From assembly GCF_006345805.1 (NCBI RefSeq), contig NW_021824253.1, positions 1 through 19,384 of the forward strand: 19,384 nucleotides of DNA, read 5' to 3'. Made by a program: the position numbers and the translations under genes. Under the pieces are notes generated by a model, which saw only the letters and a list, made by a program, of their open reading frames with translations, made no database searches and was not told the DNA's origin. This DNA comes from Octopus sinensis (lineage: Eukaryota). Positions 122-19,384 of the stretch are shown piece by piece. Numbering within the stretch: position 1 is the stretch's first letter; every line of letters begins with the position of its first letter.

Positions 122-582
122 TAAAGCGATGAGCTGGCAGAACCGTTAGCACGCCGGGCAAAATGTTTAGCGGTATTTCGTCTGTCTTTATGTAAGGCGG
201 CGAGCTGGCAGAAATGTTAGCAAGCCGGGAGAAATGCTTAGCAGTATTTCGTCTGCCGCTACGTTCTGAGTTCAAATTCCGCCGAGGTTGACTTAGCCTT
301 TCATCCTTTCGGAGTCAATTAAATAAGTACCACTTACGCACTGGAGTCGATATAATAGACTTAATCCGTTTGCCTGTCCTCTCTGTGTTTAGCCCTTTGT
401 GGGTAGTAAAGAAATAGGTATTTCGTTTGTCTTTACGTTCTGAGTTCAAATTCCGCCGAAGTCGACTTTACCTTTCATCTTTTTCGGGGTCGATTAAATA
501 AGTACCAGCAGAGCACCAGGACCGATGTAGTTGACTTATCCCCACTCCCAAAATTGCAGCCTTGTTCCTAAATTTGAAATCA
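122..582 (+). mobile_element. Old SINE-A copy (tRNA-derived; host parts 122-192 and 418-582) interrupted by a younger SINE-A insertion
   Basis: A-box-like GAGCTGGCAGAA, B-box GAGTTCAAATTCC, central GCCTTTCATCCTTTCGGGGTCGATAAA-type domain, old-type tail CCCAAAATTGCAGCCTTGTTCCTAAATTTGAAATC. Duplicated 20-mer at 173-192 and 418-437. Confidence 0.85.
193..417 (+). mobile_element. Young SINE-A, full length, nested in an older copy
   Basis: Starts TAAGGCGGCGAGCTGGCAG and ends GGGTAGTAAAGAAATAG. Flanked by GTATTTCGTCTGTCTTTATG / GTATTTCGTTTGTCTTTACG (18/20 identical; TSD). Confidence 0.85.
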
Positions 583-596
583 GTAATAAGGGGGAA

Positions 597-735
597 TATG
601 GCGGCAGGCTGAGAAAATAGTCAGCATGAGAGCAAAAATGCTTAGCGGCCTATCGACCATCATTATGTTCTGAGTTCAAATTCCCCCGAGGTCCAGTTTG
701 CTTTTATCCCTTTAGGGATGAATGAATAGGTAGCA
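597..735 (+). mobile_element. Degenerate SINE-A (head and part of core)
   Basis: GGCGGCAGGCTGAGAAAATAGTCAGC...ATGCTTAGCGG...GTTCTGAGTTCAAATTCCCCCGAGGTC aligns by eye with the other SINE-A copies. Confidence 0.7.
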
Positions 736-856
736 CAGAAAAACTTAAAACTCATCGTCAAAACCGACGAAGATCCTCATTTTCTTATATTATAATGAAG
801 ACAACACAGTAACTCACAATAGCCAAGAATTAAGTTCCCTACAATATATACATATA

Positions 857-1234
857 CTCTTTCTTTTACTTGTTTCCGTCATTTGACTGCGGCCATGCTG
901 AAGCACCGCCTTTAATCGAGCAACTCGTCCCCGGGACTTATTCTTTGTAAGCCCAGTACTTATTCTATCGGTTTCTTTTTGCCGAACTGCTAAGTGACGG
1001 GGACATAAATACACCAGCATCGGTTGTCAAGCAATGCTAGGGGGACAAACACGGACACACAAACACACACACACATATATATACATATATACGACGGGCT
1101 TCTTTCAGTTTCCGTCTACCAAATCCACTCACAAGGCTTTGGTCGACACTTGCCCAACATGCCACGCAGTGGGACTGAGCCCAGAACCATATGATTGGTA
1201 AGCAAGCTACTAACCACACAGCCACTCCTGCGCC
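857..1234 (-). mobile_element. SINE-B (tRNA head, CORE-like CCTTGGGCAAGT region, internal microsatellite, ~200 bp 3' module)
   Basis: Reverse complement matches the + copy at 7403-7812 along its whole length, with a small deletion near 1145. ORFs 814-1020 and 1037-1225 are by-products of this repeat. Confidence 0.88.
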
Positions 1235-1272
1235 ACACTGGTGGACATTTTTAATTATCTTGCTCTTAAAGC

Positions 1273-1360
1273 TAAGTAGCAGTTGAGTACTGAGGTCGAT
1301 GTAATCGACTTACATTCGATACCGAAATTGCTGACTTTGTGCTAAAGTTTGAAATCAATA
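1273..1360 (+). mobile_element. SINE-A 3' fragment (old-type tail)
   Basis: TAAGTAGCAGTTGAGTACTGAGGTCGATGTAATCGACTTA...AAATTGCTGACTTTGTGCTAAAGTTTGAAATCAATA. Confidence 0.7.
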
Positions 1361-1829
1361 CTGTGGAGAAATATTATCTTGATTAAAGATATGAACGAAG
1401 ACCAAATAAGCATTTGCTTCTTTCCCCATCTTCAAATATGATAGAGCTTTCTTTTCAATCTAATATGTCTCAAAACACGGCGGATTGCTGGTTCCTTTCA
1501 ACGGTAACCACATTTAAAATGGTCATGATTTCAATTAAACAGAGAGCGAAGAAGTGGTTGCTAAAGTATGATTCGAAATTTACATTGAAAGATATTCCAG
1601 TATTTTCTACGAATTGGTTTGTATAGTTACAATTGAAGAAATTTATGAAATAATAAATAATTCTTTCATTGCATATTTCTGCCCATTACCGCTACGAATA
1701 AACAACCATTAATATACATAAAATATGGCGACTCTCGTCAGGAGTTTCTTTCATATGAGGTTACGAACTAGATTGAAAGCATTCTGTATGTGTATAGAAA
1801 ATACATCGCCGTCTCCAGTTCATTGCAAC

Positions 1830-2211
1830 TCTTTCTTCCCTTCTGTACACATACATGCACACATACACACAAACACATGTACATACATGCATTCACACAA
1901 ATACACACACGCACACATATATATATGTATACATGCACATGTGGTTGTGTGCTCTAGGTGTATAAGTGTGTTTATGTACAATTAGGACGTTATTGTTTGT
2001 GGGAAGAATCGTGTATATATAAATACACAGACAGCTACGCACATATATTCAGACATTCATACACACACAAACACACACAGACACACTCGCACACACGCAC
2101 TTATAAACACTTGTGTGTGTGTGTATTGGTGCGTATAATATGTACATATTGTGTATGATATATAATATATATAATATATATATATATATATACATATGCA
2201 CACACATGTAA

Positions 2212-2242
<31 letters not shown>

Positions 2243-2400
2243 CGAACACGCACAAGTCACAGTAACAGATCAACCTCTCACACATCGACATACATTCACA
2301 CACACACACGCATACACACAAGCACACACAAGCACGTACACTAATATACGCAGGAATCACACATACGAACACACACACTCACACAACACACACACAAACT
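1830..2400. repeat. Compound (CA)n/(TA)n/(TG)n microsatellite region
   Basis: Dinucleotide runs visible directly; the overlapping ORFs are HTHT/VCVC/YIYI artefacts. Confidence 0.9.
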
Positions 2401-3134
2401 TGTAATCGCTCCCACAACACACAACACAACCAGAACAAGTCGATCTCATATTTCCTCTTCCTACGGTAACCATAGCAACCAAACCTCCCACACAATAGAT
2501 ACCATGCGTCTACATCAACCTCTATATCTATATCTATATCTATATCAAATATTATCCCTGCATCTGCTTCCATACCGGTACTTAACGAAAATTAAAAGAG
2601 CATTTCCGATAATCCCTTACATTTTTGATTAATGCAACTTTACATTAATGCAATCTTCACAATCATTCCAAGGTTTTACGAGTCCACGAATCCAGGAGTC
2701 CATTTAGGCAGCGAAGTCTTCCGAAAGAAAAGCCAGCCGCTGCTACGATTATCGTTTTCGTAAACAAACGTCTGTGTACTTAAAGTATATAATACGTAAC
2801 CTGAAGCATTTGTCAGACATCATGTAACCAGCAAATGTTAATATATTTTCCAAGCTAACGGCGGAATTATGAAAAATTCACTGTTATTCTTATCATGCTC
2901 ACTTAAATAATTAAATTTTCACCCAAAGATAATAATCTTTATATATTGTATAGTGGTTGATCGGTTTCTAGGCTTTATCGTTAATATTCAACCTGATAAG
3001 CACGACATATATGTATTTGCTATAATTCACCGTTGATAAACGAAAGTATTATCTTAAAAGCTGATTTCCAATTCATGTAAATTACAGAAATTTTCGTTAT
3101 TAACTCCGGTGAGTTTAATCAAACTTATACGTTT

Positions 3135-3303
3135 ATGCATGCATGTGTGCAAGCATGTATGTATGTATGTATGTATGTATGTTCGTATGTATGTGTGTAT
3201 GTATATATACATATACATATGTATAAATTGATATATATATATATATACACACACACATATATACATATATACATTCATATTCATATATATGAATATATAT
3301 ATT

Positions 3304-3344
<41 letters not shown>

Positions 3345-3643
3345 AAATATATACATACTTATGTATACATATACATATGCATCCATCCTTCTTACATGTA
3401 TTTCATAAATACATACATACACACACCACACACACATATATATATGTGCGCATATTTATACACATACATATTCATATATATATATATATATATATTTTAT
3501 ATATGTATATATACATATATATTTTATATATATAAACTTAGATACATATATATATAAACCTACACATACACACGAATGCACACAGACGCACCACACACAC
3601 ACGCACACACACACACATAAATATACATATATATATGAATTTG

Positions 3644-3675
<32 letters not shown>

Positions 3676-3700
3676 CGCTTACACATGTATATATTGTATG
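3135..3700. repeat. Compound (TATG)n/(TA)n/(CA)n microsatellite block
   Basis: Seen directly in the sequence. Confidence 0.9.
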
Positions 3701-3929
3701 AATTCACCGTACAAATCTGATGTATTAAGATATTTCATTAGACTGATTGAATTAATCATGAAAATTCTACAAATTACATGAATTGGAATCCACTTTTACG
3801 GTACGAACAATTACTAAAGCTTCGAACAGATTACTCTTCCCATGTTAGCGCTTAGCTTATAAACCCTCCGAATTGTGATGACAAAATCACAACTGCAATC
3901 CGTCAAGTAGACCTTAAAGCCGGACTAAA

Positions 3930-4075
3930 GGGTTTAGTCAACTATATAGGAATTAACGGTATATTTTGCTGAACCGCTATTTACGAGGACGAAATCAAAC
4001 CAATGCCGATTGTCAGTGAAGCAGTGGCGGGAAGAAACACAAACATAAAGACACACACATACTAACACACGTACA
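3930..4075 (-). mobile_element. Highly decayed SINE-B 3' module
   Basis: TATTTTGCTGAACCGCTATTTACGAGGACGAAATCAAACCAATGCCGATTGTCA resembles 975-1030 (TTTTGCCGAACTGCTAAGTGACGGGGACATAAATACACCAGCATCGGTTGTCA). Confidence 0.6.
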
Positions 4076-4165
4076 CATACACACATACATACACACACGT
4101 ATATACACAACCATGCATGCACATAAACATACACACATATATATACATATAGATGGGCTTACTTT

Positions 4166-4224
4166 CCACATGGTTCCGGGGTAAGTCCTAGCGCGTAGAT
4201 CCTGGACAGGTGTCTTCTATAATA
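4166..4224 (+). mobile_element. Decayed SINE-B head fragment
   Basis: CCACATGGTTCCGGG...GTGTCTTCTATAATA resembles 19091-19150. Confidence 0.5.
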
Positions 4225-4239
4225 AATTGTATAAATTGA

Positions 4240-4387
4240 CATATATATATATATATATATCTATATATATATATATATTGTATATATATATATATATATA
4301 ATATATATATATACATATAAATACTTATGTATATAAATATATATGTATATATACTTATGTATGTATGTATATATTCATACTATAATA

Positions 4388-4443
<56 letters not shown>

Positions 4444-4468
4444 TTATGTTTAAATATATATGTATATA
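4240..4468. repeat. (TA)n-rich microsatellite
   Basis: Seen directly in the sequence. Confidence 0.9.
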
Positions 4469-4784
4469 CGACCTTAAAGCCGGACTAAATACTCATGTTG
4501 CTATTCCGGCGCCTTCCTCTAGTGTGGCCTGGTTGCTCTGTGGAAACCGATAGAGACTCAGTGACATTTTATGCCTCTTTGGCGAAATGCCACAAAAACT
4601 ATGTGGTCCTGTGTTTTAAAGATGAGTGAGGGCGACAGCTAGGGTATAATAAATGCGGAGCTACATTTCTCAATATTATACCAGCTTCTGTTGAGAGGTG
4701 AGGGCCTTTATCATTGTGTTGCGAGTTTTTTGGTGACCATAGTAGTCCTAGCTTCACGAAAAATAAAGCAGACTGCAAAACCCT

Positions 4785-4970
4785 GTAAATTCGTTGGCGT
4801 CAGGAAGAGCATCGAGTCGTAGAAACAACTATCAAATGTGACAGTGTAGATTGGTACCATCCTCTGTTTTCGTTCTCCACCCCCAGTGTCGAACCATTCA
4901 AGCATAGAGAATGAACCCTTGAACGGTGTACGTGATGATCGTGATAATGATGATGATAATGATGATGAAG
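4785..4970 (+). mobile_element. Decayed 3' part of another retroposon (SINE-C) ending in a (GAT)n tail
   Basis: TTGGCGTCAGGAAGAGCATCGAGTCGTAGAAAC resembles a motif I recall from mollusc SINEs (GGCGTCAGGAAGGGCATCCAGCCGTAGAAAC), followed by an imperfect (GAT)n tail at 4932-4967. Single copy in the window; not database-checked. Confidence 0.5.
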
Positions 4971-5094
4971 ACGCCTAAAGGATGAAAGGCAAAGTCCACC
5001 TCAGCAGAATTCATTGGACATTAATATACAAAGACTCATAATCAAATAGCATCATACTTCCAATGTCACAATAAAAACTACAAAATGAGGTACT

Positions 5095-5415
5095 GAAATA
5101 AATACCAGTTATGCACTGGGGTGTTGGTAATCGACTTATCACCATCTCCGAAATTTCTGGCCTTGTTTCCAAATTTAAAAAGATCCTTATTATGAGTCAG
5201 TTTAAAGTGGTGCGCTGGAAAAATCGTTAGAATGCCGGTATTTCGTCCGTCTGTACGAAACACCGGTATTTCTTTATTTCAAATTCTGCCGATTTCCACT
5301 TTGCCTTTTATTGTTTCGGGGTCGATAAATTAAGTACCAGTTAGTTAAGCACTGGAGTCGATGTAATCAACTTACTCCTGAAATTGCCGACATAGTGCTA
5401 AGATTTGGAAGCATT
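5095..5415 (+). mobile_element. Two head-to-tail decayed SINE-A copies (3' fragment 5095-5185; near-full copy 5197-5415)
   Basis: TACCAGTTATGCACTGGGG...AATCGACTTATC...GGCCTTGTTTCCAAATTT, then GGTATTTCGTCCGTC...TCAAATTCTGCCG...TTTCGGGGTCGATAAATTAAGTACCAG. Confidence 0.7.
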
Positions 5416-5594
5416 ATTAGGAGTTAATTTGTTAGGTAATTAATCAGATATTTAACTAATTATTTTCTTGACAAAACGATTGAGCAAATAACCAGTCGGT
5501 TTGTCTGTGTGCCTTTGTCGCCATTTTGAGACCAAGACACTGACGTTTGCTTCGTGTCTGTCTTCATCATATATTCATATATTCATTGTAAAAA

Positions 5595-5676
5595 TTAGTT
5601 TCAAATTTTAGTACAAGGCCAGTAAGTTTGGGGCGATGGATAGGTTGATTACATCGACCCCAGTGCACACCTGGTA
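5595..5676 (-). mobile_element. SINE-A 3' fragment, cut off by the microsatellite/LINE insertion
   Basis: TTTCAAATTTTAGTACAAGGCCAG...GATTACATCGACCCCAGTGCACACCTGGTA is the reverse complement of the old SINE-A tail. Confidence 0.7.
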
Positions 5677-5682
5677 TTATCT

Positions 5683-5778
<96 letters not shown>
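5677..5778. repeat. (ATCA)n(ATCT)n tetranucleotide microsatellite
   Basis: Seen directly in the sequence. Confidence 0.95.
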
Positions 5779-5781
<3 letters not shown>

Positions 5782-6507
5782 CTTCAAACGGGAAGGAAGA
5801 ACTATTTTCATCATCCTTGTGGCTATGGCGAAAGAATGTATCTGGTGGACACGTCTGAAAGGATTGGAGACAAACACTTTCCTCTCTGGTCAATCTCTCA
5901 TCAACTTCTTCAAGTACCACTTGAAAAGGAAAGTGAGAGTAGAGAGGCAAGTTTTGTCTAGCGAATGTTTAAAAAAAAGATGGGTGAATGTAGCAAGGAT
6001 GGCACGTATGAATGACGAAGCCACCTTGAGCATAATCCTATGAACCCAGAAATTGAAAACAGAGGGTTACCCACTTGCAAACAAATGTGGTAACATATAA
6101 CAATATTGACCAAGGTTACCGTGGTCCTTTTCGTAGGCTTTTCTTCCCACGGATAAACCTTACTTGCTTTCCCCTTTACACCATATATCATAACACTGTG
6201 ATATACTATCCCTATTGATCTTTCTTTTTTCCTCTTCCCCTTTTTTCCCCTTTATTCTTCTTTTTTCATTTCTCTTTTCTTTTGTTCCTTTTCCTTTTCT
6301 TTTTTTTTCTTTTTCTTTTTTCTTTTTTCTTTTATTTATTTATTTATTTTGTTCTTTTCTTCTCTTTTACGATCCCTCTTGATCGAAAACCTACGCCACC
6401 CCCTTTTTTTGTTTCTTTTGTTTTTTGTTTTTTCATCCCCCAAAAGAAAAGCTCTACCTTGTAACTTGTCCCATCTGTGTGCAGCCCTGTGTGGCCAATA
6501 AAGAAAC
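5779..6507 (+). mobile_element. 5'-truncated non-LTR retrotransposon (Tx1/L1-like): ORF2 C-terminus (to stop at 6043) plus 3' UTR with pyrimidine tract and AATAAA
   Basis: Open frame FKREGRTIFIILVAMAKECIWWTRLKG...LINFFKYHLKRKVRVERQVLSSECLKKRWVNVARM fits the A-K-x-x-I-W-x-x-R...F...L...E...W pattern of L1/Tx1 ORF2 C-termini. AATAAA at 6497-6502, followed by simple repeats. Clade assignment is from memory of the motif. Confidence 0.72.
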
Positions 6508-6563
6508 TTATCTACCAACCAATCTACCTACCCACCTACGTACGTACGTACGTACGTACGTAC

Positions 6564-6646
<83 letters not shown>

Positions 6647-6675
6647 CCTATCTATCTATCTAGCTAGCTAGCTAT
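6508..6675. repeat. (CTAC)/(TACG)n/(TATC)n/(TAGC)n compound tetranucleotide microsatellite
   Basis: Seen directly in the sequence. Confidence 0.95.
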
Positions 6676-6677
6676 TT

Positions 6678-6800
6678 ATATACGTCAGGCTTCTTTCAGT
6701 TTTCGCCTATCAAATCCAATCAGAAGGATTTGGTAGGGCTCAATCTTTAACCACGTGATTGGTGAACAATCTTGTTCCCACATGACCACCCCTGCACCTC
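6678..6800 (-). mobile_element. Decayed, internally deleted SINE-B head
   Basis: ATACGTCAGGCTTCTTTCAGTTTTCGCCTATCAAATCC...AACCACGTGATTGGT...ACCACCCCTGCACC parallels 1090-1234. Confidence 0.65.
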
Positions 6801-7402
6801 TATGTTTTGTTTAAGTCGCTTACTTCCAATTGAATTCGTTCTCTTTGCTTATGTATAGGCATTCAGTATCTCACGTAAATAACAACTTGGACGATAGCAA
6901 AAATATCACCACACAGTTTATGAAATTATTCAGATAACATCACTAAAATCGAAACCATGTTTTGTGCTAAAAAGAAGGAAGTGGTGGTATATATATATAG
7001 TTCAGCAGGTGAATATGTTATTTATTTTATAGATTTCTCGTGATTATCATATAATGTATGATACATATACGAAGAACGACTGTTGCGTTCAATGAGGACA
7101 ACAAGTCGGAGAGACAAAATACTAGAACGAACTCTTGAATACAATCAAATCAACAGGGAATAACAAAATAAGAGAACCTATTTATTATGGCGTGCGTATT
7201 TTAATAAATATTATACATACAATACATACAGACACACACTCGCATACACACACAGATACATACTGCAAAATATCTATGATAAATATCTGTGATAAAATTA
7301 TGATTTCAAGACGAACTTTTAAATACAAAGTAAAATGAAAGAAGATAAACGTGCGCAGAAATAAGCTCGATTTGCGACGAAATGGTTACGGTTTCTGACC
7401 CA

Positions 7403-7812
7403 GGCGCAGAAGTGGCTGTGTGGTAAGTAGCTTGTTTACCAACCATATGGTTCCGGGTTCAGTCCCACTGCGTGGCAACTTGGGCAAGTGTCTTGTGCTA
7501 TAGCCTCGGGCCGACCAAAGCCTTGTTAGTGGATTTAGTAGACGGAAACTGAAAGAAGCCCGTCGTATATATGTATATATATGTGTGTGTGTGTGTGTGT
7601 GTTTGTGTGTCTGTGTTTGTCCCCCCAACATTGTTTGACAACCGATGCTGGTGTGTTTATGTCCCCGTTACTTAGCGGTTCGGCAAAAGAGACCGATAGA
7701 ACAAGTACTGGGCTTACAAAAGAATAAGTCCCGGGGTCGAGTTGCTCGATTAAAGGCGGTGCTCCAGCATGGCCGCAGTCAAATGACTGAAGCAAGTAAA
7801 AGAGTAAAGAGT
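7403..7812 (+). mobile_element. SINE-B, full length
   Basis: GGCGCAGAAGTGGCTGTGTGGTAAG (A-box-like), GGGTTCAGTCCC (B-box-like), CORE-like CTTGGGCAAGTG, internal (TA)/(TG) repeat, 3' module ending AAGTAAAAGAGTAAAGAG. Confidence 0.9.
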
Positions 7813-8070
7813 ACGTGTCACACTGAGCAAGTGGGCAAAGGAGAAAAGAAGTCTTGTTTTATCATACCAATGCTCCAGCACATGTGTTTGGTTTCAATGG
7901 ATGGTGAGCATGGCTATGGCCTTGAACTAGTTGATCGCCCTCCATGTTCTCCTGATTTCGCCCCATCTGACTCTCATCTTTTCTCCAACATGAAGAAAAC
8001 ACCTGACTGGGAATCAGTATAGCATTGATGATGATGTCATATCTCCCGATGTTGACGTTCTCCACCAACA
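7813..8070 (+). pseudogene. Decayed mariner (Tc1/mariner, irritans/Himar1-like) transposase C-terminal fragment 1
   Basis: With frameshifts reads VLFYHTNAPAH / CLVSMDGEHGYGLELVDRPPCSPDFAPSDSHLFSNMKK / HLTGNQYSIDDDVIS, matching the mariner HQDNAPAH...HPPYSPDLAPSDYHLF motifs that carry catalytic Asp 2 and 3. Confidence 0.88.
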
Positions 8071-8282
8071 TGGGAAAGTGAGCAAAATGACAAAGGTGTC
8101 AAGACAACGTTCCAGCACAGAAGTCTTTGCTTTCAACGGATGGTTGGTGTGCGTGGCTGTGGCCTTGAACTAGTTGCTCACCCTCCCTATCCTCCTGATT
8201 TTGCGCCGCCTGACTATCATCTGTTCTTCTACACCTAAAGACACATGGTCGTGAAGCACTATCGCAGAAATAATGACGTCAT
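8071..8282 (+). pseudogene. Decayed mariner transposase C-terminal fragment 2 (same region as fragment 1)
   Basis: QDNVPAQKSLLSTDG / VRGCGLELVAHPPYPPDFAPPDYHLFFYT*RHMVVKHYRRNNDVI. Confidence 0.88.
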
Positions 8283-9000
8283 AAGGCGGCGAAGCTGGCA
8301 GAACCGTTAGGACGCCGGGCGAAATGCTTAGCAGTATTTCGTCTGCCGTTACGTTCTGATTTCAAATTCCACCGAGGTCGACTTTGCCTTTCATCCTTTC
8401 GGGGTCGATAAATTAAGTACCAGTTACGCACTGGGGTCGATGTAATCGACTTAATACCTATGTCTGTCCTTGTTTGTCCTCTCTGTGTTTAGCCCCTTGT
8501 GGGTAATAAAGAAATAGGTATTTCGTTTGCCGTTACGTTCTGAGTTCATATTCCGCCGAGGCCGACTTTGCCGTCCATCCTTTCGGGGTGGATAAATTAA
8601 GTACTAGTTACACACTGAGGCCAATGTAATCGACTTAATCCGTCTGTCTGTCCTTGTTTGTCTCCTCTGTGTTTAGCCCCTTGTGGGTAGTAAAGAAACA
8701 GGTATTTCGTCTGCGTTCTGAGTTCAAATTCCGCCGAGGTCGACTTTACCTTCCATCCTTTCGGGGTCGATAAATTAAGTACTAGTTACACACTGAGGCC
8801 AATGTAATCGACTTAATCCGTCTGTCTGTCCTTGTTTGTCTCCTCTGTGTTTATCCCCTTGTGGGTAGTAAAGAAATAGGTATTTCGTCTGCGTTCTGAG
8901 TTCAAATTCCGCCGAGGTCGACTTTTCCTTTCATCCTTTCGGGGTGGATAAATTAAGTACTAGTTACACACTGGGGCCACTGTAATCGACTTAATCCGTC
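8282..9000 (+). mobile_element. Tandem array of young SINE-A: full unit 8282-8517, headless units 8518-8701 and 8702-8879, and truncated unit 8880-9000
   Basis: Units of 184 and 178 bp; each junction reads AAAGAAA(T/C)AG|GTATTTCGT. Confidence 0.92.
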
Positions 9001-9090
9001 TAGGATCGACGTCTTCAACTTAAAAATACGAGTCGGTGATCCAACATGGCTGCAGTCCAATAATTGAAAGAAGTAAACGATAAAAGATAT
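9001..9090 (+). mobile_element. Decayed SINE-B-type 3' terminus
   Basis: GGTGATCCAACATGGCTGCAGTCCAATAATTGAAAGAAGTAAACGATAAAAGATA resembles 7759-7810 (GGTGCTCCAGCATGGCCGCAGTCAAATGACTGAAGCAAGTAAAAGAG). Confidence 0.65.
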
Positions 9091-9309
9091 AAATGTCAAG
9101 TAGTAAATCAAACAGTAAACGAATCGTTGATGATTTCTAAAACAATAAAAATATTTTAGTTGCTATAGGAATAGAATCTTCTTAATATGATATTCTGAGG
9201 TATTGTCTTCACGAAAAAATTTGGACTGAATATAAATCCCCATATGTTCACGAAAACCTCGAGAATGAAAAGAAAACTATAAGATGATGCCAAAGCAATG
9301 AAACTAACG

Positions 9310-9730
9310 GAAAGTGTTATATGCTATATGCATAACACACAGCAACACTATATGCAAAAGACAAGTGTTATAAAAGAGCCATATGAGCTAAGAAGAAATA
9401 AAGGACGAGAAGCGATTGGAAATTTTTACTGCAAACACTTTATCAAACGTTCGTAGATTTCTAGAAGAGCTGATATAGTATCAAATATTGAAATAAAGAA
9501 ACTGATTTACTGAAGACCCACTGGAGATAAACCACATTGTACTAAACATAGAAAAAGTATTGATTTACTACAGGCTAATGAAAATACCAGAGAACCTACT
9601 CAATAGAAAGCACACAAGGCTTCGTAATATACAGGTAGTGACGCATCAGAATCAGTCTTGCAATAAATGGAAACTCAAATCAGGTAAAAGTATAAATGGA
9701 AAGGAATATCAAGACATTAAACAGAGATAA
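9310..9730 (+). pseudogene. Possible decayed Penelope-like GIY-YIG endonuclease C-terminal remnant
   Basis: Stop-free frame 9506-9730 contains LNIEKVLIYYRLMKIPENLLNRK, resembling the E..LI......P..LN end of PLE GIY-YIG domains. Upstream VLYAIC..(frameshift)..YMQKT is weakly GIY-YIG-like. Lies ~150 bp upstream of a hammerhead motif. By-eye similarity only. Confidence 0.3.
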
Positions 9731-9872
9731 ACACACAGAGACATATAGGACTAAATGCTTTTCTCTGCTGAAAATGATGACGAAGACCATCGAAGCCAAT
9801 ATTGAATACTCAACAAAATACACGACCGCAAAAAGTACGTTCTTTATTTGATACATGATACAAAATAGATTC

Positions 9873-9934
9873 TGCTGCTCTGCATTGATAAGGGGCAAAT
9901 ACCCCGAAACTAGTCTGTGGGTGCCCGACCAGCA
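9873..9934 (+). ncRNA. Minimal type I hammerhead ribozyme motif, U3-A8 variant (predicted cleavage after C9915)
   Basis: Core UUGAUAA 9885-9891; helix II GGGG/CCCC 9892-9895/9902-9905; GAAA 9906-9909; palindromic helix III ACUAGU 9909-9914; GUC triplet 9913-9915; helix I UCUGCA/UGUGGG 9879-9884/9916-9921 plus UGCUG/CAGCA 9873-9877/9930-9934. Confidence 0.8.
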
Positions 9935-10039
9935 AGGGGAAGCTGCTGACCTCCCCTGTTCGAAGGATATAATGGACACAGATTTGGGTGTTACATAGCT
10001 AGCTAGAGGCGATGGCCTCTTGGAGCTAATCAACGGCAG

Positions 10040-10177
10040 CATTCGTCCTATTTGGGTGGAATGGAACAACGTGAAATAAAGTGTCTCGCTTAAGGAAACA
10101 ACGCGCTGTCAGGAATCGAACTCGTGACCTAACGATCATGAGCCGAATACCCTAACCACTAACCCACGCGCCTTCAC
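10040..10177 (-). mobile_element. SINE-D: tRNA-derived head plus CORE-like segment
   Basis: Reverse complement GTGAAGGCGCGTGGGTTAGTGGTTAGGGTATTCGGCTCATGATCGTTAGGTCACGAGTTCGATTCCTG has A and B boxes, followed by GTTGTTTCCTTAAGCGAGACACTTTA. No cloverleaf acceptor stem, so not a tRNA gene. Confidence 0.78.
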
Positions 10178-10479
10178 CGGAAATTAATATATGATCCTTT
10201 AACTGTTTTGGAGGATACCGTCTTAGAATATCGTGTTGCTCTGTCCCTATAACGTTGATTGTTTTGCTATAAATTTGATCCCGGAAGTACAACCAAACAC
10301 ACAAGGAGACAAAAATGTATAGCCTTGTCCTCTTACGTAATAAACAGATTAACACTGCACTCCACAGCAGATTAACTAAGGATACTAACTTAGAAAATAG
10401 AAAAGAATATCACCTATGCAAAGAATAAGAGCTCGAGCATTCTTCGTTATTTTTGTTTTCAATTTGACTATTGATGTTG

Positions 10480-10918
10480 GTTTTAAACATTGACCAAAAA
10501 AGCCAGTAATTTCGAGGGTGAAGATTAGTCGATTAGACCGACTACAGGGTTCAACTGGTACTTATTTCATCGACCCGGAAAGAATAAAAAGGAAAGTCGA
10601 CGTCGGTGGAATTTGAACACAGAATGCAAAGACAAAACACCGCTAAGCATTTGGCCCAGCGTGACAATGATTCTGCCATTTCGCCGCATTCACTGATCTT
10701 AGAATTGGTTTCAAATTTTGGGAAAAAGCCAGCAATTATGGGAGTGCGGGTTAGTCGATTTCATGAACTCCAGTTTTTAACTGGTACTTGTTTTACTGAA
10801 TCCAAAAGGATGAAAAGCAAAGCCGACTCCGGCGTAGTTTGAACTCAGAATGCAAAGATGATACATCGCTAAGTATTTAGCCCAGCACACTAGCCATTAT
10901 ACCAGTTAGTCGCCTTTA
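10480..10918 (-). mobile_element. Two head-to-tail old SINE-A copies (10480-10690 and 10705-10918)
   Basis: Each contains the reverse complement of the core (CTGGTACTT...ATCGACCC...AAAGG...AAAGTCGAC..GGAATTTGAAC.CAGAA) and of the head (GCTAAGCATTT.GCCCAGC). Confidence 0.75.
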
Positions 10919-10928
10919 TTGAACATAA

Positions 10929-11334
10929 CATTTTGACACAAGGTTAGCAGTTTCGAGGTTGGGAGTAAGCCGATTACATCAAATTCAGTGTATCGCTGGT
11001 ACTTTGTTAATCGACCCCAAAAGAGTGAAAGGGAAAGTTGATGTCAGTGGAATTTGAACACAAAATCTAAAGACGGACAAAATACCTATTTCTTTACTAC
11101 CCACAAGGGGCTAAACACAGAGGAGACAAACAAGGACAGATAGACAGATTAAGTCGTTTATATCGACCCCAGTGCGTAACTGGTAGTTAATTTATCGATC
11201 CCGAAAGGATGAAAGGCAAAGTCGACCTCGGCAGAATTTGAACTCAGAACGTAACGGCAGACGAAATAACACGGACAAAATACCGCAAAGCATTTTGCCT
11301 GGTGTACTAATGATTCTGCCAACTCGCCGCCTTA
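10929..11334 (-). mobile_element. Old SINE-A containing a 5'-truncated young SINE-A (11086-11270) flanked by a 13-bp TSD
   Basis: Exact direct repeat ACGGACAAAATAC at 11073-11085 and 11271-11283 surrounds the young unit, which ends at the family tail (+ strand CTATTTCTTTACTACCCACAAGGGG). Confidence 0.85.

Positions 11335-17612: not shown

Positions 17613-17674
<62 letters not shown>
17400..17674. repeat. Compound (TA)n/(CA)n/(CT)n microsatellite
   Basis: Seen directly in the sequence. Confidence 0.9.
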
Positions 17675-17885
17675 TTTCTTATGCCCACAAGTGGCTAAAC
17701 ACAGAGGGGACAAACGGATCACGTCGATTACATAAACCCCAGTGCGTAATTGGTACTTATTTAATCGACCCCGAAAGGATGACAGGTAAAGTCGACCTTG
17801 GCTGAATTTGAACTCAGAGCGTAGAGGCAGAAGAAATACTGCTAAGTATTTCGCCCGATTCAAGCGATTCGGCCAGTTCACTCGC
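17675..17885 (-). mobile_element. Young-type SINE-A (moderately diverged) whose tail abuts (TA)n
   Basis: TTTCTTATGCCCACAAGTGGCTAAACACAGAGGGGACAAAC...CCCCAGTGCGTAATTGGTACTT...GAATTTGAACTCAGAGCG is the reverse complement of unit 8282-8517. Confidence 0.85.
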
Positions 17886-18695: not shown

Positions 18696-19050
18696 TATAC
18701 CACTACGATTATGCAAGGAAAAGAGAGAATGGAGAGTTATTATAATCTAATAATCATTCTACTATTTTTTTATTTACTTAAAAATATTAAAGATAGATTC
18801 AGTGAATCTATTTATGCGACTTTGGTTCCAAATTATGGATGTCAAAAAAAAAAATTCTAATTGGATTTTGCACTATACTGGAGTTGGGTGAAATAAAACT
18901 TCGTTTAAATTGACAATGCAGGGAAGTTAAGAATCGCATAAAATGTTTGAGTTATGAAGTTAGCTGCCTGTGGTTTTTTTGCTTCCTTTTTCGTTTAAAC
19001 GATATCATGTTATCGGGTACGATGCTTCGCTATAAATATATACATACATA

Positions 19051-19218
19051 GGTGCAGGAGTGGCTGTGTGGTAAGTAGCTTTCTTACCAACCACATGGTT
19101 CCGGGTTGAGTCCACTGCTTGGCACCTTGGGCAAGAGGCTTCTACTATACCCTCGGGCCGACCAAGGCTTGTGATTGGATTTTGTAGACGGAAAGTGAAA
19201 GAAGCCGTCGTATGTATG

Positions 19219-19279
<61 letters not shown>
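19051..19279 (+). mobile_element. SINE-B head plus microsatellite (3' module absent)
   Basis: GGTGCAGGAGTGGCTGTGTGGTAAG...CACCTTGGGCAAG...GTAGACGGAAAGTGAAAGAAGCCGTCGTATG, then (TA)n. Confidence 0.88.
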
Positions 19280-19282
<3 letters not shown>

Positions 19283-19296
19283 GTGTGTATATGTTT

Positions 19297-19380
19297 GTAG
19301 CTTGATTACCAACCACATGGTTCCGGGTTCAGTCCCACTGCGTGGCACCTTGGGCAAGTGTCTCCTACTATAGCCTCGAG
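19297..19380 (+). mobile_element. Second partial SINE-B head
   Basis: GTAGCTTGATTACCAACCACATGGTTCCGGGTTCAGTCCCACTGCGTGGCACCTTGGGCAAGTGTC. Confidence 0.85.
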
Positions 19381-19384
19381 TTGA

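Follow-up and report, generated by a model that had tools for sequence, protein, structure and literature searches.

A tRNA-like SINE of Octopus sinensis with about half of its insertions at a single nucleotide of related SINE heads

SINE-A is a short interspersed element (SINE) of Octopus sinensis. We analysed it in a stretch of 19,384 nucleotides (assembly GCF_006345805.1, contig NW_021824253.1, forward strand; hereafter the window, our contig C724) and in the whole assembly of 2,719,151,902 bp and 13,516 contigs. About half the time SINE-A lands at one fixed nucleotide in the heads of related SINEs, between positions 50 and 51 (50|51) of its own consensus, and the evidence supports a retrotransposition target rather than a chance or an assembly feature. 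The element is tRNA-like and its tail, which ends ...GTGGGTARTAAAGAAATAG, is of the type found in long interspersed elements (LINEs). Its consensus of 234 bp was derived from 32 full-length copies, and GTATTTCGT begins at position 51. The relatives that we call B-type SINEs have the head and core in common with SINE-A to about position 168 and then carry different tails. By divergence the classes are ordered as alpha (0.040), beta (0.065) and gamma (0.070), delta (0.087, an older A subfamily) and B2 (0.103).

Junctions in the window and in the genome

The window is AT-rich, with microsatellites and SINE copies throughout. The 19-nt junction sequence AAAGAAAYAGGTATTTYGT occurs exactly at 408-426, 8508-8526, 8692-8710 and 8870-8888 on the plus strand and at 11077-11095 on the minus strand, and the five junctions of the original prediction are thus all present, with 0.00 expected (200 shuffles). 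They belong to the following features, where TSD stands for target site duplication and HSP for high-scoring segment pair.

122-192, plus strand: head of host SINE 1, old B-type, consensus ~1-70; upstream TSD copy at 173-192
193-417, plus strand: full-length SINE-A insert, beta-like, ending ...AAAGAAATAG; 92.4% to the A consensus 1-234, with one 10-bp internal deletion
418-585, plus strand: host SINE 1, body: consensus 51 onward, ending in a B-type tail of its own, which is unlike the A tail; downstream TSD copy at 418-437
8283-8517, plus strand: array unit 1, full-length SINE-A copy that the subfamily markers place in alpha, the youngest subfamily; tail GGGTAATAAAG; HSP 1-234, 95% identity
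8518-8701, plus strand: array unit 2, consensus 51-234 (HSP 50-234); private variants in common with units 3 and 4
8702-8879, plus strand: array unit 3, consensus 51-234, with a 6-bp deletion in common with unit 4
8880-9000, plus strand: array unit 4, consensus 51 to ~176 (HSP 50-176); 3' end cut by unrelated sequence
11271-11333, minus strand: head of host SINE 2, old B-type, consensus 1-63; TSD copy at 11271-11283
11086-11270, minus strand: SINE-A insert, consensus 50-234, 94.6% to the A consensus; starts at the target-site position
10917-11085, minus strand: body of host SINE 2, from consensus 51 to a B-type tail; TSD copy at 11073-11085

Both host SINEs had been read as old copies whose inserts are flanked by TSDs with host-type bases, and this is borne out. 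The copies at 173-192 and 418-437 match at 18 of 20 bases and those at 11271-11283 and 11073-11085 at 13 of 13, and the joined flanks are collinear with the B consensus (86% identity for 122-192 plus 438-585, 78% for host SINE 2). Both are true nested insertions. Nested insertions are found in the wider genome too: a host head, 8-30 nt after GTATTT and then a full-length head were found together in 96 exact hits at ~60 independent loci, with 0 in the control.

The insertion site had been placed between the A and B boxes of the head. It is indeed upstream of the best B-box-like match (consensus 76-86, 25 nt downstream of the site), but it directly adjoins the best A-box-like match (consensus 41-51); each match agrees at 6/9 specified positions. 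Searches of the window with Rfam and ARAGORN, and of the consensus with ARAGORN, gave no match. RNAfold on the consensus predicts pairing of 34-44 with 51-61 (8 Watson-Crick and 3 G-U pairs) around a 6-nt loop, TTAGCG, the 3' edge of which is the insertion point. As a side observation, the hairpin pair would be kept by the common CpG-decay variants A38 and T57.

Genome-wide, the exact tail GTGGGYAVTAAAGAAAYAG occurs 80,712 times and is followed by GTATTT in 43,932 cases (54%). The 12-mer across the tail junction, AAAYAGGTATTT, was counted 67,172 times, and TTAGCRGTATTT, the same site in its native head context, 74,983 times; reversed-pattern controls gave ~1,700 and 570. For individual loci we took the first 100 SINE-A tails on contig C1, spanning 10.8 Mb, with a background of 234 kb. 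The starts of the BLAST HSPs on the consensus are bimodal in this sample, at position 1 (64) and position 50 (64), and by locus 46 are monomers and 40 are clusters that contain one junction or more. The clusters have one junction (30), two (6), three (3) or nine (1), the longest array being of 10 units, and in 35/40 of them the first unit starts at or before consensus position 14 and is essentially full length. Since 30 of the 40 clusters have a single junction, the phenomenon is not the product of a few long arrays. That the preference is not absolute had been noted from the copy that abuts (TA)n at 17675, and this applies at large: the head site is absent after 45/100 sampled tails and after 46% of those in the genome. 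The window copy is

17672-17857, minus strand: 5'-truncated SINE-A, consensus 33-233 (HSP of 82% identity), tail adjoining (TA)n; an insertion outside a SINE head

The target motif

Sampled tails with no SINE after them are mostly followed by GTA or GTAT. The GTAT... lies within the TSDs and is thus target sequence, which rules it out as part of the SINE tail. The motif was read from 28 TSD-verified insertions outside same-sense heads, and the pre-integration consensus is ACG|GTATTT, the bar marking the insertion point. Upstream, A is found at -3 in 16/28 sites, C at -2 in 14/28 and G at -1 in 26/28; downstream, G at +1 in 20/28, T at +2 in 26/28, A at +3 in 24/28 and T at +4, +5 and +6 in 14, 13 and 13. 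TSDs of these copies are 9-22 bp long (median 13.5), and the position of cleavage relative to the motif is defined in them. Of the 3' flanks, whose tabulation had been proposed as a check, 54% of 80,712 continue with GTATTT, and a matching motif is found at verified sites elsewhere.

The head site, GCG|GTATTT, matches this target consensus at 8/9 positions; in the SINE head the motif reads GCG|GTATTTCG (consensus 48-58). Since the head site carries the target motif of the family, the "homing" site is an ordinary target of SINE-A. Target specificity is a degenerate motif of ~7-9 bp and the endonuclease preference is moderate. Of the sequence-specific endonuclease that had been put forward, a tail-linked preference for ACG|GTATTT stands, while strict specificity does not, given the degenerate motif and the ~46% of tails elsewhere; we infer that an endonuclease is the source of the preference. 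Complementarity between tail and target does not account for the hotspot, as the tail ...AAAGAAATAG contains no GTATTT and the motif is inside the TSD.

Junctions show a bias to the sense orientation. An antisense site in the core, CTG|GTACTT, is about as available as the head site and has 2 junctions in the sample against 66 at the head site; genome-wide, a 22-nt pattern for it gave 512 junctions, against 67,172 with the shorter 12-nt pattern of the head site.

TSDs of the delta subfamily (tail ...GGGCAATAAAGAAATA) start with GAAA(C) instead. A second, minor hotspot of junctions has head position 17 after the tail, CAG|AAAC (AGAAACGTTAGC), as in these loci:

L030 (C1_3188905): position-17 junction
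L014/L015 (C1_477398): position-17 junction
L019/L020 (C1_833075): position-17 junction

Delta seems to hit a different matching motif within the same SINE head. A family with a related tail (...GTGTGGCCAATAAAGAAA) has ~8,900 copies genome-wide at up to 2 mismatches, and in most of 100 matches listed the tail is followed by TTATCTATCTATC... / (TATC)n, which suggests a microsatellite-targeting relative. The window has a non-coding element of ~730 bp at 5775-6507 (plus strand) with the related tail ...GTGTGGCCAATAAAGAAAC, inside (CTAT)n, between (CAAT)n(CTAT)n at 5690-5770 and (CTAC/CTAT)n at 6510-6660. In one sampled locus (C1_833075_836494, ~1335; L019/L020), an element other than SINE-A, with the related tail ...GGTGGGCAATAAAGAAATTC, adjoins GTATTTTGTCTG of a SINE body at the same nucleotide. 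As the related-tail family is tied to (TATC)n and delta to GAAA, tail-linked target choice seems to be a property of the element group.

Structure and origin of the arrays

The units that follow another unit have a nearly constant 5' end: 63/77 start at consensus 50-52, without a TSD. More than 95% of junctions are without a TSD, and each adds exactly one unit of 184 bp (consensus 51-234). The original prediction spoke of variable 5' truncation, and this does not hold for such units; even the minus-strand insert 11270-11086, which had been taken as truncated, starts at the target-site position 50/51. Among units with non-SINE DNA upstream, only 1/90 starts at 51, after the related tail of another element, and this rules out a fixed 5' end of the RNA or a reverse-transcriptase stop at 51. 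SINE-A copies with non-SINE DNA upstream start mostly at 1-14 and then at 17, 18, 22, 23, 24, 33, 42, 46, 67, 73 and 90; truncation points are scattered among them, as for SINEs mobilised by LINEs. Since nested events with TSDs are rare, the 5' end must be resolved at this one nucleotide in more than 95% of events, and fixed 5' ends without TSDs argue for homology-guided 5' joining rather than ordinary end joining.

Adjacent units differ in age and in a consistent order. In 35 adjacent pairs the upstream unit is of the younger class and in 1 of the older (p = 1e-9). Within the same composites, compared over core positions 71-160 at equal CpG count, the A part is 0.064 and the B2 part 0.103 diverged (Wilcoxon p = 0.004). 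Whole composites are flanked by a single B-type TSD that does not start with GTA. Junctions at this one nucleotide link all three younger A subfamilies with B1, B2, B3, delta and A hosts, so the junction was formed many times. Additionally, 6/30 first units have C50, compared with 12/21 beta/gamma monomers (p = 0.009); G50, which the motif requires, is thus in excess in the heads of first units.

Adjacent units have a mean distance of 0.096, against 0.1125 for random pairs, and 8/40 adjacent pairs fall below the 5th percentile of random pairs, most of them from two arrays. Long arrays homogenised by concerted evolution, as expected of a satellite, are not what is found here; most adjacent units are as diverged as random pairs. 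Local duplication is present, as in the 10-unit array with adjacent distances of 0.02-0.07, in one pair at 0.011 and in window units 2-4. Tandem Repeats Finder reports the window array with a period of 178 and 3.6 copies, and units 3 and 4 differ at 5/121 sites. Given the private variants common to units 2-4 (8518-9000) and the 6-bp deletion of units 3 and 4, at least one of the three array junctions is a DNA-level duplicate. That insertion seeds tandem arrays is supported; part of their growth is duplication of DNA.

We favour a mechanism of motif-preferring target-primed reverse transcription (TPRT) into the heads of relatives, with homology-guided 5' joining and later local duplication, to which we give a probability of about 0.65. 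A putative partner LINE would copy SINE-A into the genome by TPRT, with machinery that may prefer to nick at 5'-ACG|GTATTT-3' on the SINE-bearing strand. Because the motif sits in the head of the SINE superfamily, resident relatives (old B-type copies, older A subfamilies and A itself) would act as preferred targets. After a sense hit, the growing complementary DNA (cDNA) would be homologous to the host head and its 5' end could be resolved by annealing there, a step that fits the fixed 5' ends. The product, 184 bp longer and with no visible TSD, would consist of the host head, a new body with its tail and, downstream, the original body of the host, and the first unit of the array would retain a complete promoter-like head. 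Ordinary 5' joining, presumably rare, would give a host head, a TSD and a full-length insert, as at window 122-437. Later hits would fall mainly on the 5'-most head, the sole keeper of the CG|GTAT context, and arrays would thereby be ordered from young to old. Unequal exchange or slippage would enlarge them as well. As for the idea that insertion disrupts the promoter of RNA polymerase III (Pol III) in the host, it applies to the displaced host body and to internal units, which are without a head, but not to the first array unit, which keeps the complete host head.

Several points weigh against this mechanism or limit it. More than 95% of junctions are without a TSD, so that TPRT there is inferred and not seen. 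The partner LINE and its endonuclease are putative, and the comparison was made within one genome. The G50 result could reflect array-specific subfamilies instead, and the ratio of head to body divergence (2.1 in first units, 1.8 in monomers) is a modest test of host-derived heads. Host-type bases at 63-66, as expected of an absorbed TSD, were found in ~7/42 first units and 4/44 monomers, which is no clear enrichment in a hand tally without a formal test. The marker C66 (GCCGCTACG) is often found in array units and rarely in monomers, and points to some lineage effect. Finally, head sites are over-used beyond what the motif and the number of sites would give, by a crude factor of roughly 4- to 65-fold: ~4-fold when compared with the antisense core site and tens-fold when compared with CGGTATTT sites outside SINEs, on background counts that are small, and too small for a firm enrichment figure over a motif-only expectation. 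The factor, equally crude, is larger if only the head sites that are currently intact are counted. A stronger form of the idea is that SINE-A homes on its relatives beyond the nick motif, guided or rescued by homology (annealing of cDNA to the host or 3' read-through of the RNA), that resident copies supply the A-box half to the promoter-less 184-bp units, and that this is the main source of the ~65,000 tandem junctions over unequal crossing-over. We hold it only tentatively and lean against it; if true, it would be a direct route by retrotransposition from an interspersed repeat to a proto-satellite.

The same composites could come from a single event in which the reverse transcriptase starts at the tail of a host-type SINE RNA, copies it as far as position 51 and then switches to a SINE-A RNA, resuming at its 3' end, which would leave perfect head-to-tail concatemers with one TSD. 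Template jumping by non-LTR (non-long-terminal-repeat) reverse transcriptases is reportedly established by the work of Bibillo and Eickbush, and such jumps would account for perfect junctions without TSDs, for full-length first units in 35/40 clusters and for a flanking TSD typical of the family of the last unit. However, no stop at 51 is seen, either in A units (1/90) or in background B copies (0-1/~40, from a hand-read listing), and in the sample, as read by hand, the acceptor is always an A-type tail (once the related tail of another element), with no B tail in that role. Template switching also leaves unexplained why the junction coincides with a target motif that was derived independently, and why, within one locus, divergence is higher in the B2 part than in the A part; the young-to-old order would need three A subfamilies of different age to be expressed together, and the nested cases with TSDs require another mechanism anyway. 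We therefore regard it as unlikely. Descent of the junction from a few founder dimers or composites, for example an A unit with a B2 body, which served as masters, were retrotransposed whole and were then multiplied by satellite-like unequal crossing-over, seems improbable too. In its favour, local duplication is clear in some arrays, and a marker that few monomers carry is enriched in array units. Of 435 exact-motif copies of B2-type bodies (motif GATCTAATCGACTGG) genome-wide, 255 carry the junction, with a SINE-A tail in front, and 180 have their own head. Pol III could also read through several units, as the consensus has no TTTT run. Yet parts of equal age, which such descent implies, are rejected (0.064 vs 0.103, p = 0.004), adjacent units are mostly random-like, with 8/40 pairs closer, and 30/40 clusters contain just one junction. 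Propagation by descent from one composite A-B2 master is ruled out by the unequal divergence together with the many combinations of subfamily and host. Slippage between the GGTATTT of the head and a TSD that starts with GTAT was also considered as the origin of dimers and rejected, given that adjacent units are random-like and last units come from older families.

Guided homing, a stronger version of the favoured mechanism, would place part of the preference in the RNA, alongside that of the endonuclease. Masters that sit in heads would give transcripts that read through their 3' end into GUAUUU..., and these could pair with nicked heads and direct priming. The over-use of head sites in comparison with equally good motif matches elsewhere fits with such guiding, and so do the existence of an array-associated subfamily, one monomer of which landed at ACG|GTATTTTTT, and the related-tail family, where most of the 100 matches listed run into (TATC)n, as expected of machinery with target-dependent priming. 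Against it, alpha monomers, whose masters need not be in heads, still prefer G|GTAT, and the junction GTATTTCG has no Pol III terminator unless its CpG has decayed to GTATTTTG. RNA guiding as the general explanation is the most doubtful of these alternatives, although a lineage effect of the C66 type, possibly through read-through RNA that guides priming, may exist beside the motif-preferring TPRT that we favour.

Relation to known systems and other features

The junction is a case of a transposable element nesting in itself at a hotspot of its target motif, which is known for Alu and differs here in motif, scale and product. Levy, Schwartz and Ast 2010 (PMC2836564) describe the insertion of Alu into older Alus at one prominent nucleotide, in sense orientation, after the A-rich linker, and this is the closest precedent, likewise a SINE that enters older relatives at a single position. 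In Alu the site follows an A-rich stretch, which fits poly(A)/T-rich priming, whereas SINE-A has the motif ACG|GTATTT and a tail that is not poly(A). A small minority of Alus are involved, against about half of SINE-A units, and the product of SINE-A, unlike that of Alu, is a precise tandem repeat of unit length without TSDs.

R2, R1, the Tx1 group (Keno, Kibi, Koshi, Mutsu) and Dong/R4 are said, after Kojima and Fujiwara, to be target-specific non-LTR retrotransposons. They have in common with SINE-A a TPRT at a defined nucleotide of a repeated target, and the related-tail family described above is tied to (TATC)n. In those elements nearly all copies are in the target, whereas SINE-A has ~46% of its copies at diverse sites with a degenerate motif and does not reside near-exclusively in one target sequence. 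Chimeric L1 insertions, in which nascent cDNA anneals to a resident L1, have reportedly been obtained in cultured-cell assays by Gilbert, Symer and colleagues, and there too the 5' end of a TPRT event is resolved by homology with a resident copy. Chimeric L1 formation usually deletes the intervening DNA and is rare, whereas in SINE-A the joining would be the normal outcome and would add exactly one unit.

SINE-derived satellites or tandem-like arrays are described for squamates (PMC10702118) and bivalves (PMC11481361), with unequal recombination or repeated insertion at the same locus proposed as their origin, and the latter gives ~2-3% of SINEs in tandem-like arrays in potato and blood clam. 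Those of squamates and bivalves are likewise head-to-tail repeats of part of a SINE. In comparison with the ~2-3% cases, ~47-54% of SINE-A is in arrays, the unit boundary is the target motif and the units are ordered by age. In the octopus repeat literature we found no description of the SINE-A junction.

With about half of a family of ~100,000 units in arrays, the origin of tandem repeats from interspersed elements becomes testable in octopus genomes. A short target preference together with homology can make resident copies landing pads that supply the promoter half. Annotation calls for caution here, since models of "dimeric" or "multimeric" SINEs in the repeat libraries of cephalopods may represent nested insertions and not families.

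Two other SINE copies of the window are uninterrupted:

10523-10690 and 10753-10916 (10523-10916), minus strand: two old B-type SINEs with a decayed head site (GGTGTTTTG and similar); HSPs 1-173 and 1-168, 79% and 74% identity

A B-type SINE at 5209-5400 (plus strand) has a local CCGGTATTTC duplication in its head, around the GTATTT site (5236-5275), with ~21 nt between copies. In the locus sample, 0/10 full-length B monomers are of B2 type (7 of the 10 come from the 234-kb background). Heads can also be repeated alone: minisatellites in which the SINE head to 15-26 nt past GTATTT is repeated head-to-tail, with a period of 65-66 bp (76 bp once), were hit by the pattern at G000:C1:195358956-195359249, C3430:1374-2207, C7:15322785-15323083 and C4:103048078-103048274.

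Directly upstream of the window array, at 8143-8250 (plus strand), there is a remnant of a mariner-like transposase that translates as ...HPPYPPDFAPPDYHLF...; a more decayed mariner-like copy is near 7900-8010, the remnant being apparently present twice in tandem. A different tRNA-like SINE (GGTGCAGGAGTGGCTGTGTGGTAAGTAGC...) with internal (TA/TG)n is found in the window at 855-1240 (minus strand), 7403-7812 (plus strand) and 19050-19384 (plus strand), and one sampled SINE-A, L022, sits inside a copy of this GGTGCAGGAGTGGCTGTGTGGTAAGTAGC... SINE, at TG|GTAAGTAGC.

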